From Lytechinus pictus (lineage: Eukaryota), in NCBI RefSeq assembly GCF_037042905.1, contig NC_087255.1, forward strand, positions 19,282,001-19,346,000: a stretch of DNA of 64,000 nucleotides, given 5' to 3'. Numbering within the stretch: the first letter of the stretch is position 1; each line of letters starts with the position of its first letter. Positions 11,354 through 55,173 of this stretch are shown here, piece after piece. The position numbers and the translations under genes are program-made. The notes beneath the pieces were generated by a model. The model had not been told where the DNA came from and searched no databases. It saw nothing but the letters and a program-made list of their open reading frames with translations.

Positions 11354-12365
11354 ATGACAAACCTGTCGGGTCTGTATTTTCTGCAAGGGAACGCTGTCCT
11401 GCTTGCCTTTGCGATGCTGGTGTGGTGCTGTCCCACCACGCAGGTAACGCTGCATCGGGACCGCAGGGTTGTGGCGGTAGACGACCCCCTGGTTGACGGC
11501 GTCCGATCTGATGGCCACTCGAGCTCGTTGCTGGTCTCTGGAGTTGGAACTTCAGTCATGCCGTCGTCAGTCGTTGTCGACACTCACCGGCAGGTATACA
11601 ACAGGGAGTCGGTGTCGGGTGGGACACGGTCGTCGGGGAATGACGTCCCCAGTGGAGTGCACAATTCCATGCATCTTGACTCCACGAAATTCCCGTCGGT
11701 GAGACCTTCCACAAGAGAAATCATTGAGAAACAGTGGGGAGGTGGGTCTAGAGAAAGTACAGGAAGGGGGCAATCGCCATCGGGACACACGCGGACAGGA
11801 GCATTACATAAATCAGGAGGAGCCGCCGCCGCCGCTGGAAGCACCGGCAAAGGTGTCAGGAAGGGTACCCAAGAGTCGTCAGATCTACCTCCAGAGGCCG
11901 ATGGAGGAGGGGGTAGAGGAATGGATGTAATTGGAGCAATACCAGGAGAAGGGAATAATGAACCATCGGAAAGAATCATAGACGACTCGCCGATAGCAGG
12001 AGGGGGAATCGACGTCGACGGAGCTGTGAAATACGACGTCCCGAAGCAGACGACGTGTGAGAAATGTAAGAAACAGCGCGACGAAGAGCTCCTGGAGCAG
12101 TACGATCCCAACGCCCTGATGCAGCTTCGGATAGAAACCATCAAACGCCGCATCCTTGACAAACTCCGGATGGAACGCCCCCCTCAAGTCAACATGAGTT
12201 CAATCAACGTCCCAGCGCCTCTGTCAGAGGGTGCTTTCATAGCTGGAGGCGAGGAGGAAGTTCGGCATCATGTCCATCAAGTTCCCAGTGATGCAGAGGA
12301 AGATTATGATACATCGGAGGATTATTATGGAAAGACAACCAGGGTTATCATAACGGCCAAAGCAG
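11354..12365 (+). CDS. TGF-beta superfamily ligand A (activin/inhibin-beta/myostatin/Dawdle-like), coding exon 1: signal peptide and N-terminal prodomain
   Basis: ATG at 11354 (aacATGa) is followed by a hydrophobic signal peptide (LYFLQGNAVLLAFAMLVWCC). An in-frame ATG at 11294 is an alternative start. Prodomain motifs: CEKC...LRIETIKRRILDKLRMERPPQV and EDYYGKTTRVII. The exon ends at donor GCAG|GTGAGT (intron starts 12366, phase 1). Confidence 0.92.
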
Positions 12366-12800
12366 GTGAGTTTATCACAAATTTCAACCATCCGAATATT
12401 GATTTCAATCATTTGATCAGATTGTCCTTATCCAGGGCAGTCAATGCTGTTCCCCTCCTGAGCCTTGCTGTGTTTAATACACTATCATTGAAGCAATTCT
12501 TTACAATTATACATGTCATGATTTGTGTTGAATTGAAAATTAAAACACAAATCTATTAGGTTATAATCTCTATTCCTAGACATTAGAAAGGTCCCAGAAT
12601 TTGAACCAAATTTAATCGGATCTGAGCTCTCAGTGGATGTCTTTGCAATATTAGGCTGTTAGTTTGAGGATCGTTTGAGTTATTTTCATGTCAGGTAAAA
12701 AAAATGTCTCATTCAAATTGACAAATCTCTTTTAATTGTAAAAAGCAAACAATGCACATTATTGCGCGACTGCATTTATGGTGCCATATAGATGATGTGA

Positions 12801-12960
12801 ATCATCACCATTATCACCACCACCATCGTCATCATCACCGTCATCGTCATCATTACCATCACAGTCTCCACCTAATCCCCCTTTCCTCTTCCCATCCCCG
12901 CTCATCACGTCCCCTCCTCCTCATCATTCATTATCATCATCATCAACATCATCATCATCT
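12801..12960. repeat. (CAT/CAC)n microsatellite
   Basis: Directly visible. Confidence 0.9.
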
Positions 12961-13729
12961 CTTTGAAAACGGATTTAGTAGAATGGTAGAAGAATCATGC
13001 TTTGAACTTCCAAGCATTGGTAAAACATCACGTGAGATTATGAAAAGGTTTTCGTATGGATGCACTTTGCAACAAACTGTAAAACTTGTCCTTAAATCCA
13101 CTTTCGAGCAATGACTACATAACGAAGTTTAAAAGAAATTTTTCATTATGTGTAATCAAAAGAGACTTTGAACATCATTGAAGACTCTTCGACAATGTCA
13201 TAAAATTTGCACTTGAACTTGTTCACAGATCTTCACAAATATTGGTGTTTGCCATCCATTCTCTGATTACAGAATAGTCATAGAAGTCTGATCGGCAAAG
13301 CGAATATAATCTTTGGACACGGACCATCGAGATGGAATTATTCATTTATACATGAGAGATTAAATCATTGAAGAAATTAGTTTCAGTTTATCTGCAGATG
13401 TGAAAAACTCTTTACTAAAAAGGGCAATAACTCCACTTTTCATGCTTTTATTGTTTTAGCGAGAAAAGGGAGTTATCTCCTGGGCCCCTATCAATGAATA
13501 GGCACTTAGCCATGACTGTATTACCATGGAAATTATTAGTTGATTATTTTGATTAGATTCTGAGCCATGTTACAATTGCAGTTTCCACGATTGCCAAGTT
13601 ACCATAGTTGTAAGTCCTCTTGAAATGGGACCCTGACTTTGTAAGCATAACGAATAACATATATTTACAAAAAGTGATTTGTTATTTTTCATTTTTTTAA
13701 AGAAAAGGTTCCAAGACATTAACCCTTAA

Positions 13730-14330
13730 AGGTCAAGTCCACCTCAGGAAAATGTTGATTTGAATCAATAGAGAAAAATCAGACAAGCATACTGCTGAAA
13801 ATTTCATTAAAATCGGATGTAAAATAAGAAAGTTATGACATTGTAAAGTTTCGCTTATTTTTCACAAAGTAGTTATATGCACAATTCAGTCACATGCAAA
13901 TGAGAGAATCGATGATGTCCCTCACTCACTATTTCTTTTGTTTTTTATTGTTCGAATTATACATTATTTCAATTTTTGTAGATTTGACAATAAGGACCAA
14001 CTTGACTGAACCATAAAATGTAAAGCAATTGTAATTCAACATGTTCAGGGAGAAATAAACTTTGTTTCACAGGACAATGAGGAGAAAATTAGAATATATC
14101 ATATTTCATATATTAAAATACAAAAGAAATAGTGAGTGAGTGATGTCATCACTTCCCTCATTTGCATACCGACCGGGATGTGCATATAACCGTTTTGTGA
14201 AATTAAGCGAAACATTAAAATGTCATAACTTTCTTATTTTACATCCGATTTTGATGAAATTTTCAGTGTTATGCTTGTTGGATTTTTCTCTTTTTATTCA
14301 AATCAATTTTTTGTTGGGTAGACTTGTCCT
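13730..14330. mobile_element. Kolobok/T2-like MITE family A, in the intron of ligand A
   Basis: TTAA|AGGTCAAGTCCACC ... GGTAGACTTGTCCT|TTAA. Confidence 0.9.
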
Positions 14331-14377
14331 TTAAATAGAGCCCAGTTATTTGATAGCAGTGCCAGTGTAGATGTTAA

Positions 14378-53090: not shown

Positions 53091-53506
53091 AAGGCCATCG
53101 CACACGTTACGACTGTTCGCGATCCGACTTTGGAACAATCGCGTTTTGCTCATTTTCTGAAAATGTGAATGGAACATATCATTTTATTTGAGGTTATAAT
53201 TAATTGAAAGAATACTAATATAATCATTTTGAAAGATTGCAAGCCTTTATTTTGGAGTAAAGACCAAATTAGTTTCAAATCGTAGCCAATCGTACGACTG
53301 CTATGACGTCATTACGACTAGATATTAAATTCGTTTTTATTCTAAGAAGGATGATAACATAGTCACAGATTTGAACATATGTATTCTTACGATGATTTAG
53401 AATATTACACAGTAAGATATTCCAAGTCTCAATATTAGCATCAAATTCTACTACATTTTATTCTGAAATCGGGTCGCAGACCGATCGTAAGGTGTGCGGT
53501 CGCCTT
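53091..53506. mobile_element. TIR MITE
   Basis: AAGGCCATCGCACACGTTACGA ... TCGTAAGGTGTGCGGTCGCCTT. A partial reverse copy lies at about 61130-61369. Confidence 0.72.
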
Positions 53507-53559
53507 GACGTATTTTTGTGTTCTACATCCATCAACCAGTTAAGTGCGTGTTACGAAAG

Positions 53560-54430
53560 ACAATACCGAGGTTTCGCAATAGCAACGGGGATGGAGTCTA
53601 CAACATAGTAAATCTATTGAAAATGCCCGTCAAATCACAATACACAACTGGGAGTTCTTTGTCGAAAATTGGTGAACCGGAACAGCAGTTTCGTCGTAAC
53701 TTTCGGAGCTGACGATAAATTGCACAGTATGTCATTTGACAAGAGTCACGTCGGACGAAACTGTTGCTCTGATTCACAAACTCTCGACAAAGACTGCTTT
53801 GTTATGAAGGGCTCTTGACAATATATTTTCTATGTTCCCGAAGGTGTCGTGCGCTATGGAAGTGGAAACCTATTTAGGAGTTTTCACACCGTGACGTAGA
53901 ACGCTTCCAAGAACATAAAGAAATGTATTGTCAAATGCCCTTCATGACAAAGACAATCAAGGACTCTCTTTGTCGAAAATTTGTGAATCAAATCAGCAGT
54001 TTCGTAATGGACTCCAGCTGGATTTATGAAGCGCTTTTTGCCTGAGGATACAAAGCGCTGCTATTATTACCCCGGCTTTAACTCGAGCTACCATCACCGG
54101 CGCTCAGTGCATGCAAGGAATTACTCCTGCCGGTTACCCATTCACCCCACATGGGTCGAGTGCAGCACAGTGCGGATAAATTTCTTGCTGACGGAAACAC
54201 GCCATGGCTAGGATTCGAACCCATGACCCTCTCTTTCAAAGGCGAGAGTCAGAACCACTAGACCACGACGCACCCACAAACGGCATATTTTCAATTTTTC
54301 ATCAGTTCCGAAACACATGACGAAACTGCAATTCCGGTTCATCATTTTTCGGACAAAGACCCGCAATTTTTACAATCATTTGACGCTTATTTTCAATACA
54401 TTTACTGTGTTCTCGTCGTTCTGCGTCGCG
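53560..54430. repeat. Large imperfect inverted repeat of a locally multiplied repeat family, interrupted by a SINE
   Basis: GTCGAAAATTGGTGAACCGGAACAGCAGTTTCGTC-type unit forward at about 53600-53850 and reverse at about 53895-54420. Further copies lie at about 47500-47740 and 52620-52870. Confidence 0.7.
54026..54275 (-). mobile_element. tRNA-derived SINE, family 1
   Basis: On the - strand: GGGTGCGTCGTGGTCTAGTGG...GGTTCGAATCC (intact A and B boxes), followed by a non-tRNA body shared with 7731-8015. Confidence 0.85.
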
Positions 54431-54530
54431 GTTACCAATATTCACTTTAAAAAATACTTGATTCCATCTCATTATCTCTTATACTTGACTTTTTTGGAAA
54501 CAACATATAATCTATCATGTCTATTCTTAC

Positions 54531-55173
54531 CTGCTACGCCTACTATAAGTTGCTTGTTGGTTTTCTCGACGTCATGCTCGTAATCTTCGTCATCCTCTAT
54601 TTCGTACTTTTCTGACTCGCTAAAAATTTTCTCAATAACCTTCGGGTCAACGTTCGGAGTGTCACCTTTGACGAGCGGCGGAAACTGGAGGTGCAAGGCA
54701 TCCAGGATGTGCTTCTTGAGAGCTTGAATTCGGTATTCCTTCTCAGCCGCAGACATCTTCGTCGACAACGACCCCTGATCACCGACATCGGGTTTTATTG
54801 TATTCCGCATACGACAGTTCGGACAGGGGAATGATGTGTCTAGTTGTTGCGGTGGTTGAGATGACGTCGAAAATGAGGATGATGTCAGGGGATCGAACGA
54901 TAAAGGCTGATGATTTGAATGAGACGATGACGTCTTAGTTATATGGAGATTATTCGAACCCGACGACGATATCGGCGGTGAGGTAATGACCTCGGTGGAA
55001 GGGGGTATTCTGCGACGAGGCGACTCATGAACGCCGTTGACTCCGAATATTCGGAGCTTTGGCCAGCTGGCTGAGAGGCGGGCTGGAGAAGCCGAAAGAT
55101 GGATGCAGTTGCATAGCAACACAAAACAGAAGATGGATAACTGGAAGGGATGCGATCCGCTAACAGTGTACAT
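54531..55173 (-). CDS. TGF-beta superfamily ligand B (divergent activin/myostatin-like paralogue), coding exon 1
   Basis: ATG at 55173 is followed by a signal peptide (FQLSIFCFVLLCNCIHLSAS) and a Ser-rich linker. Motifs: CPNC...YRIQALKKHILDALHLQFPP and acidic EDDEDYEH..KTNKQLIVG. Donor GCAG|GTAAGA (intron starts 54530, phase 1). Confidence 0.92.

Follow-up and report, generated by a model that had tools for sequence, protein, structure and literature searches.

A conserved convergent pair of TGF-beta ligand genes in the sea urchin Lytechinus pictus and its possible origin by local inverted duplication

How two TGF-beta ligand genes came to lie tail to tail in a sea urchin genome, and whether they are each other's closest relatives, are the questions raised by a stretch of 64,000 nucleotides of Lytechinus pictus DNA (RefSeq assembly GCF_037042905.1, contig NC_087255.1, positions 19,282,001 to 19,346,000 of the forward strand). 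This whole stretch is referred to as the window, and coordinates are counted from its first letter. The two genes, here called ligand A and ligand B, are complete TGF-beta superfamily ligand genes of the activin/myostatin/TGF-beta branch, which carries the nine-cysteine (9-Cys) pattern defined elsewhere (PMC4564238). The original prediction had read them as an ancient local inverted duplication. The gene models, the identities of the ligands and their real, conserved linkage can, taken alone, be stated with high confidence; the full explanation, which adds the expected signalling and the duplication origin, appears to have a slightly better than even chance of being correct.

Two complete ligand genes in convergent orientation

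The locus had been described as holding two complete 9-Cys ligand genes on opposite strands, with about 17.3 kb between their stop codons. Open reading frames (ORFs), splice junctions and Pfam matches bear this out: A and B are convergent and their stop codons lie 17,333 bp apart. The two genes are composed as follows.

11354-12365, forward strand: ligand A coding exon 1, with the signal peptide, a low-complexity stretch of ~200 residues, the prodomain CxxC and the alpha-1 helix
12366-31106, forward strand: ligand A intron, 18,741 bp, GT..AG, phase 1, with simple repeats and repeats resembling miniature inverted-repeat transposable elements (MITE-like)
31107-31855, forward strand: ligand A coding exon 2, with the prodomain arm, furin site, mature domain and stop codon
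31514-31525, forward strand: ligand A furin site RRRR, in exon 2
31526-31852, forward strand: ligand A 9-Cys mature domain, 109 residues, in exon 2
31853-31855, forward strand: ligand A stop codon, in exon 2
54531-55173, reverse strand: ligand B coding exon 1, with the signal peptide, a Ser/Pro-rich stretch, CxxC and the alpha-1 helix
49929-54530, reverse strand: ligand B intron, 4,602 bp, GT..AG, phase 1, with MITE-like repeats
49189-49928, reverse strand: ligand B coding exon 2, with the prodomain arm, cleavage site, mature domain and stop codon
49534-49551, reverse strand: ligand B multibasic site RRRTRR, in exon 2
49192-49533, reverse strand: ligand B 9-Cys mature domain, 114 residues, in exon 2
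49189-49191, reverse strand: ligand B stop codon, in exon 2

Translation of ligand A from the ATG at 11354 gives a spliced protein of 586 residues, as read from the ORF list and the junctions. Exon 1 closes on the first base of the split codon at a GCAG/GT donor (phase 1; the slash marks the exon end), and the acceptor is a CAG after a pyrimidine tract, with exon 2 starting at 31107. Confirmation of this junction comes from P0004, a Diadema antillarum protein that reads continuously across it and whose gene has the same two exons, 31 kb apart. An alternative start is offered by an in-frame ATG at 11294, 60 nt 5' of 11354; the L. pictus database model begins there, and the Paracentrotus lividus protein is ~21 residues longer than ligand A at its N-terminus. 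The TGF_beta domain (Pfam PF00019) is recognised with 94.9 bits (E 6e-27; gathering cut-off 27). With regard to the prodomain, a C-x(n)-C at the start of exon 2, a CxxC before the furin site and the RPF motif are all present. No Pfam-recognisable ORF was found in the intron (12366-31106).

Ligand B starts at the ATG at 55173 and its spliced protein comprises 460 residues. Its GCAG/GT donor, at the exon 1 end at 54531, is again in phase 1, after the first base of the split codon, and the acceptor is the AG at 49930-49929, which follows a long pyrimidine tract and is the same, base for base, in Strongylocentrotus purpuratus. This acceptor was accepted on the strength of that conservation and because the resulting junction agrees with the NCBI models of both the S. 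purpuratus and the Diadema protein. A second candidate at 49873/49872, which would yield a protein of 441 residues, was ruled out, as 19 residues found in both of those proteins would be missing from it. The TGF_beta domain (PF00019) scores 72.8-73.1 bits (E 4e-20) against the same gathering cut-off of 27; the Pfam TGFb_propeptide profile is significant for ligand A and not for ligand B. Ligand B does not have the prodomain cysteines of the activin-like group, and the RP of RPF is lost throughout the B family except in Diadema.

Several features are common to both ligands. The mature domains of A, of B and of all the echinoid orthologues contain nine cysteines, the inter-chain cysteine being kept, and both tryptophans of the type-I-receptor motif are retained in A and B. 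The prodomain signature that had been noted for the pair, CxxC plus RI..(I/L)K..IL..L, is indeed seen in both, and both have hydrophobic N-termini, with the signal peptide judged by eye. Among solved structures, the top matches of A and of B are pro-GDF8 and then pro-activin A, and both prodomains align to pro-GDF8 structures.

The two genes are separated by the following region.

31856-49188, no strand: intergenic 3'-to-3' region, 17,333 bp, with three N-gaps and non-coding blocks collinear with S. purpuratus
45438-45795, 47902-48070 and 48149-48291, no strand: N-gaps of estimated length, 0.9-3.8 kb downstream of the B stop codon
44787-45102, no strand: conserved non-coding element, 80% identity over 321 bp with S. 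purpuratus, lying across the gaps from B

Three gaps of estimated length between the genes raise the possibility of a scaffolding artefact, in which the N-gaps alone would join two genes that are not true neighbours. All three gaps are intergenic, and none lies within an exon or intron of A or B, which leaves the reading frames untouched. The S. purpuratus locus (L004), which contains no N, aligns collinearly with the window to either side of the gaps, in the order IgGFc-binding neighbour, B exon 1, B exon 2, element 44787-45102 and four small blocks down to ~38.7 kb. In S. purpuratus 4,070 bp separate the conserved element from the end of B exon 2, against 4,078 bp in the window, and the collinearity goes on for a further 6 kb towards A. 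Moreover, one D. antillarum contig (JBFRCO010000998.1), without N in the loci, carries the A orthologue at 189224-222218 on the forward strand and the B orthologue at 242436-245847 on the reverse strand, convergent and with stop codons ~20.2 kb apart. Given the gap-free collinearity in the first species and the gap-free contig with the same pair in the second, the misjoin that the original prediction had allowed for is very unlikely indeed, its probability being close to nil. A reservation attaches to the S. purpuratus comparison (AAGJ06000003.1), which covers B and the non-coding blocks, the 10-kb flank stopping ~7 kb before Activin. By our own estimate, the probability that an adjacent ligand pair would arise within 50 kb by chance is a few percent (~15 ligand genes in a genome of ~0.9 Gb), and chance adjacency is ruled out by the same layout being kept in Diadema. 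The tail-to-tail arrangement of A and B is genuine and is conserved among echinoid genomes.

The D. antillarum assembly holds the B locus twice, on JBFRCO010000998.1 and on JBFRCO010000557.1, with 98.2% identity over 23.5 kb. The second contig is most likely a haplotig, reflecting uncollapsed haplotypes.

Names, orthologues and subfamily placement

Between ligand A and P. lividus Activin B (P0178, D2J5T0, 603 residues), identity is 69% along the whole protein and 85% within the mature domain. Of the last 33 coding bases of A, 29 match the gene-specific primer used for rapid amplification of cDNA ends (RACE) of S. purpuratus ActivinB (PMC2634790), and Sp_Activin is 586 residues long in the alignment of the Lepage laboratory, the same length as A. 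Compared with sea urchin Activin B (EU526314; ACZ60068 / D2J5T0; GLEAN3_07004), A shares the length, the C-terminal coding sequence and the long low-complexity N-terminal prodomain, and differs by species only. With the named orthologues as its best matches, a conserved junction and conserved synteny, A belongs to the echinoid Activin B group, and these comparisons identify it as the orthologue of sea urchin Activin B. ActivinB has been reported to form part of the signal by which micromeres induce endomesoderm (PMC2634790).

Ligand B is 74% identical to S. purpuratus GDF8 (XP_003730703.2, P0165) and 46% identical to the Diadema 'GDF8-like' protein P0171. It has the two-exon structure, the junction and the upstream IgGFc-binding neighbour in common with the S. 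purpuratus gene, and on this evidence it is identified as the orthologue of S. purpuratus 'growth/differentiation factor 8'. The sea urchin inventory lists Activin together with myostatin-like A, B and C (PMC11239237). The printed C-termini and lengths of myostatin-like A and C do not fit B, and by elimination only, B is probably the 'myostatin-like B' (MSTNB) of the Lepage-laboratory nomenclature; the equation of S. purpuratus GDF8 with Sp_MSTNB (GLEAN3_02795) is likewise made by elimination, and the name GDF8 finds no clade support here. The original prediction had allowed that the pair might already be described as linked, known orthologues. Both genes are indeed already named in relatives. 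With regard to the linkage, no paper on the Activin B-GDF8 adjacency was found in the searchable literature, a search outside which the key 2006 inventory lies; the conserved convergent adjacency is documented here.

The placement of both ligands within the family was addressed with L-INS-i alignments, bootstrapped neighbour-joining (NJ) trees and profile comparisons, the key analyses being run with the 460-residue model of B. In these data, clade I comprises deuterostome and cnidarian activin-like genes, clade II MSTN/GDF11 and clade III inhibin-beta together with arthropod Activin-beta. Clade II, made up of vertebrate MSTN/GDF11, the Glandiceps gene and one Lingula gene, is recovered with 100% bootstrap and clade III, with vertebrate inhibin-beta and arthropod Activin-beta, with 94-99%, and neither includes A or B. 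A as sister of clade III receives 0% and B as sister of clade II 3-8% at full length, and clades II and III split from all others with 73-89% support in the full-length column sets. The remaining assemblage (I/IV/V/VI), which contains Saccoglossus Activin, Ptychodera and amphioxus 'GDF8-like', Nematostella 'inhibin beta B' and Lingula, Antedon, insect and chelicerate genes, is poorly resolved by NJ, with A plus clade I below 1%. Profiles agree with the exclusion from clades II and III: A scores 313 bits by hidden Markov model (HMM) and 500 by hhalign with clade I vs 161-187 bits for clades II and III, and the B family matches the I/IV/V/VI assemblage best (hhalign 280) and clades II and III worst by both HMM and hhalign. 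A midpoint-rooted NJ tree of 101 taxa, in which B stood near the root, was discarded for placement as a long-branch effect. A and B thus lie outside the true myostatin/GDF11 and inhibin-beta/activin clades, and the placement outside the inhibin-beta clade fits the report that no true inhibin/activin gene was found in sea urchins (PMC2832003).

Exon-intron structures were mapped exactly for eleven genes and the introns placed on the protein alignment. A single phase-1 GCAG/GT intron at a homologous position in each ligand gene had been noted from the window, and the two do fall in the same alignment column. This column is shared with the echinoid orthologues and with the amphioxus, crinoid and hemichordate activin-like genes, and also with hemichordate and stickleback myostatin and Takifugu inhibin-beta Aa (inhbaa); the CxxC and alpha-1 signature is equally general among the mapped family members. 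Identical architecture and signature had been offered as evidence of duplication, but since both are common to every family member mapped, and ancestral to the whole branch, they provide none. The discriminating trait, unlike the phase-1 intron, is a second, phase-0 intron before (K/Q)PF, which is present in Glandiceps and stickleback myostatin, giving three coding exons, and missing from A, B and their Diadema and S. purpuratus orthologues.

The comparison with known ligands shows a mosaic. Vertebrate myostatin/GDF11 has the 9-Cys domain, a W-x-W motif, the prodomain CxxC with the alpha-1 helix and the phase-1 intron in common with A and B; it differs from them in its second, phase-0 intron, and from A in not having the prodomain cysteines that A keeps. 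Conversely, inhibin-beta/Activin-beta and the invertebrate activin-like genes have the two-exon architecture of A and B, and the pre-furin CxxC and RPF of A, but W-x-x-W where A and B have W-x-W. Within the invertebrate activin-like group, which includes Saccoglossus Activin (NP_001161496), A finds its best profile match by far. The mixture of features first remarked upon in A, a myostatin-like W-x-W combined with activin-like prodomain cysteines and RPF, therefore stands. The names 'Activin B' and 'GDF8' are best taken as labels rather than statements of orthology, and they mislead because neither gene falls within the vertebrate-type myostatin clade or the inhibin-beta clade.

Some further observations concern ligand A and its relatives. 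Residues ~35-225 (window 11450-12030) form a Gly/Ser-rich, poorly conserved stretch of ~200 residues between the signal peptide and the CxxC, which accounts for the length of echinoid Activin B, 567-603 residues vs 400-494 in the hemichordate, amphioxus and crinoid relatives. Echinoderms have a very long single intron in the activin-like gene, with 18.7 kb in Lytechinus, 28.0 kb in the crinoid Antedon and 31.3 kb in Diadema; the corresponding intron is 2-3 kb in amphioxus, Ptychodera and the B orthologues, with the exception of ligand B of the window at 4.6 kb. Exon 1 of ligand A is 99% identical to an L. pictus RefSeq entry, LOC129271545 ('uncharacterized protein', 420 residues), which corresponds to window 11294-12559 on the forward strand, that is, Activin B exon 1 plus a read-through into the intron. 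LOC129271545 is a truncated Activin B gene model, and the 18.7-kb intron is probably the cause of the truncation.

The origin of the pair

The duplication reading requires that A and B be sisters. In a search of 1.84 billion representative proteins, the best non-orthologous matches of B are the A orthologues P0005 and P0004; a higher-ranked match, P0021, was set aside as an artificial construct that joins two vertebrate myostatin mature domains in tandem. The reference NJ tree joins A and B as sisters with 46-67% bootstrap, and with 48% when the mature domain is used alone. A, B and the A-like protein P0059 share a W-x-W that is one residue shorter than the W-x-x-W of eight out of eight clade-I sequences. 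The distribution of the motif over the families is consistent, with W-x-W in 4/4 A-family, 3/3 B-family and 10/10 scorable clade-II sequences and W-x-x-W in clades I and III. In favour of a sister relationship are also that the genes are neighbours, that A and B both match the I/IV/V/VI assemblage best, that B is without the phase-0 intron of the myostatins, and that no B orthologue was detected outside echinoids in the scan of representative proteins, which consist of predicted proteomes. The two families have diverged at different speeds: between Lytechinus and Diadema the mature domain is 56% identical for B vs 78% for A, and B evolves about twice as fast as A. P0059, for its part, sits on an intronless contig of 4 kb.

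A number of points weigh against a sister relationship and hence against local duplication. Support for A+B is weak to moderate, and it comes from distance trees only, in which B is a long branch, and from a data set without sea urchin MSTN-like A and C, Panda and TGF-beta. When the prodomain columns are used alone, A+B drops to 4% and B joins the myostatin clade with 45%. W-x-W is also the clade-II state and may be homoplastic or point to a myostatin affinity, and B, like clade II, is without the prodomain CxxC before the furin site. Residues exclusive to A+B number two in the prodomain and none in the mature domain, which is not above the control groups. A is far closer to the clade-I genes than to B. 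At the DNA level no trace of the duplication was found, the inverted repeats between the A and B regions being dispersed MITE-like elements. Two motifs picked by eye as typical of A+B, YCRGSC and P-K/R-x-x-G, turned out not to be exclusive. All in all, a local inverted duplication of an activin-like gene in the echinoid/echinoderm lineage is the most economical account, not a proven one, and its chance of being right is about even.

The main rival to local duplication is that B is an older paralogue retained in linkage: A would be an activin and B a myostatin/GDF8-11 orthologue, and the pair a relic of a pre- or early-bilaterian tandem duplication kept only in echinoids. The database and literature names Activin B and GDF8 suggest as much, as do the 45% of the prodomain-only tree and the traits common to B and clade II, namely W-x-W and the missing pre-furin CxxC. 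Human GDF11 and INHBC/INHBE lie together on 12q13, and MSTN and INHBB on 2q. Nonetheless, the fully supported clade II excludes B and clade III, at 94-99%, excludes A; the clade-II-specific phase-0 intron is missing from B, and A and B alike score worst, by HMM and by hhalign, with these same two clades. A separate sea urchin 'myostatin-like A' stands beside the hemichordate, amphioxus and Nematostella myostatins in the published alignment, and the reported lack of a true inhibin/activin gene in sea urchins (PMC2832003) also speaks against an activin identity of A. Microsynteny had been proposed as a check in the original prediction, and the convergent pair recurs in Diadema. For the amphioxus, Antedon, Ptychodera and Glandiceps genes, no second TGF-beta gene was found within the 10-kb flank, which is shorter than the echinoid spacing of 17-20 kb and makes this weak evidence; of the wider-synteny results, only Lingula, in which the clade-I and clade-II genes are on different scaffolds, carries weight against old linkage. 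Overall, we consider retained ancient linkage unlikely, if still worth taking seriously. A further alternative is that older paralogues were joined by a rearrangement in the echinoid ancestor, without local duplication. This would agree with the absence of a DNA-level duplication trace, MITE-like inverted repeats being all that was found, and with the modest support for A+B. Yet the A orthologues are the best matches of B in the whole representative library, a B orthologue was not detected elsewhere, and members of one small subfamily are not expected to become neighbours by chance and then to keep a stable layout between Lytechinus and Diadema, so that such a secondary adjacency appears improbable.

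Under local duplication, an activin-like gene would have been copied in inverted orientation in the echinoid or echinoderm lineage, and divergence would then have been asymmetric, A changing slowly and B fast, with loss of the prodomain cysteines in B. The duplication origin, its timing, the receptor usage of the ligands and any functional coupling between them are inferred.

Expected function and the surrounding DNA

The locus contains two intact genes, which would be transcribed separately, each from its own promoter at the outer ends of the pair, ~44 kb apart. Each pro-protein is expected, from what is known of the family, to undergo furin cleavage and dimerisation and to signal through Smad2/3 via activin-type receptors. 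Each has the parts needed for this, from signal peptide, alpha-1/latency helix and furin site to cystine knot, inter-chain cysteine and both tryptophans, and in the case of A the expectation is in line with what has been published on ActivinB in endomesoderm induction (PMC2634790).

Whether the linkage has a function of its own can be considered under any of the origins discussed above. The pair might be a functional two-ligand module held together by shared enhancers or by a heterodimer or agonist/modulator relationship. The linkage is conserved across echinoids, conserved non-coding blocks are found in the shared 3' intergenic region, through which shared regulation is conceivable, and the inter-chain cysteine is kept in both ligands. 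Such a module nevertheless seems distinctly unlikely: convergent orientation puts the promoters ~44 kb apart, the non-coding conservation does not reach Diadema, and linkage may persist merely for want of a breakpoint in 20 kb. A more specific version, in which B is an echinoid-specific derivative that heterodimerises with Activin B or modulates it under intergenic elements serving as shared enhancers, is decidedly improbable, and the same low probability is attached to its corollary, that B would act during the micromere-to-macromere endomesoderm signal, an echinoid novelty.

The element at 44787-45102 has stop codons in all frames and no codon periodicity, and its identity with S. purpuratus is as high as that of the coding exons; it could represent a cis-regulatory element or else a distal 3' untranslated region (3'UTR). 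Further non-coding blocks collinear with S. purpuratus are found at 44312-44392, 43818-43920, 39933-40050, 38738-38928, 56534-57177 and 58697-59127, and these too may represent candidate regulatory elements or distal 3'UTR. Between Lytechinus and Diadema no non-coding block is conserved, the exons and one dispersed repeat being the sole conserved sequence.

Beyond ligand B, the window contains IgGFc-binding-protein-like exons at 61657-63999 on the reverse strand (Pfam PF17517, E 3.8e-36 on the ORF 61661-62698). They are 78-82% identical in DNA to the gene upstream of S. purpuratus GDF8, by which the synteny reaches beyond the ligand pair. MITE-like repeats with inverted termini of ~110-320 nt are located in both ligand introns and in the flanks (4550-5770, 13720-14320, 50085-50700, 50740-51280 and 58030-58546, plus 14403-14976 vs 41924-42501). 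A core of ~100 bp is shared with the Diadema locus (L001:5266-5371) and with the S. purpuratus locus (L004:21169-21295). These repeats match neither an Rfam family nor a tRNA, and for the window as a whole both kinds of scan were empty. Ten intronic and intergenic ORFs gave nothing credible against Pfam, and the His-rich or Asp/Glu-rich pseudo-ORFs at 1296-1607 and 12752-13114 derive from trinucleotide-type simple repeats and are not genes.

Linked TGF-beta paralogues are a known kind of arrangement, of which A-B is one more example, and with both genes already in the literature and databases the gain is modest. It includes the flagging of the truncated L. pictus Activin B gene model. The misleading names matter when results on sea urchin 'activin' or 'myostatin' are set against those from vertebrates. 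The closest known case is univin-bmp2/4, which is tightly linked in sea urchin, hemichordates and amphioxus and has been read as a tandem duplication followed by divergence (PMC4729200). Both pairs consist of adjacent TGF-beta ligand paralogues; univin-bmp2/4 is kept across deuterostome phyla, whereas A-B is shown within echinoids only, is convergent and has one strongly accelerated member. A-B thereby offers a clean case, comparable with univin-bmp2/4, of asymmetric divergence after a probable local duplication. Co-expression of the two genes, if shown, would be relevant to the tuning of the ActivinB endomesoderm signal.

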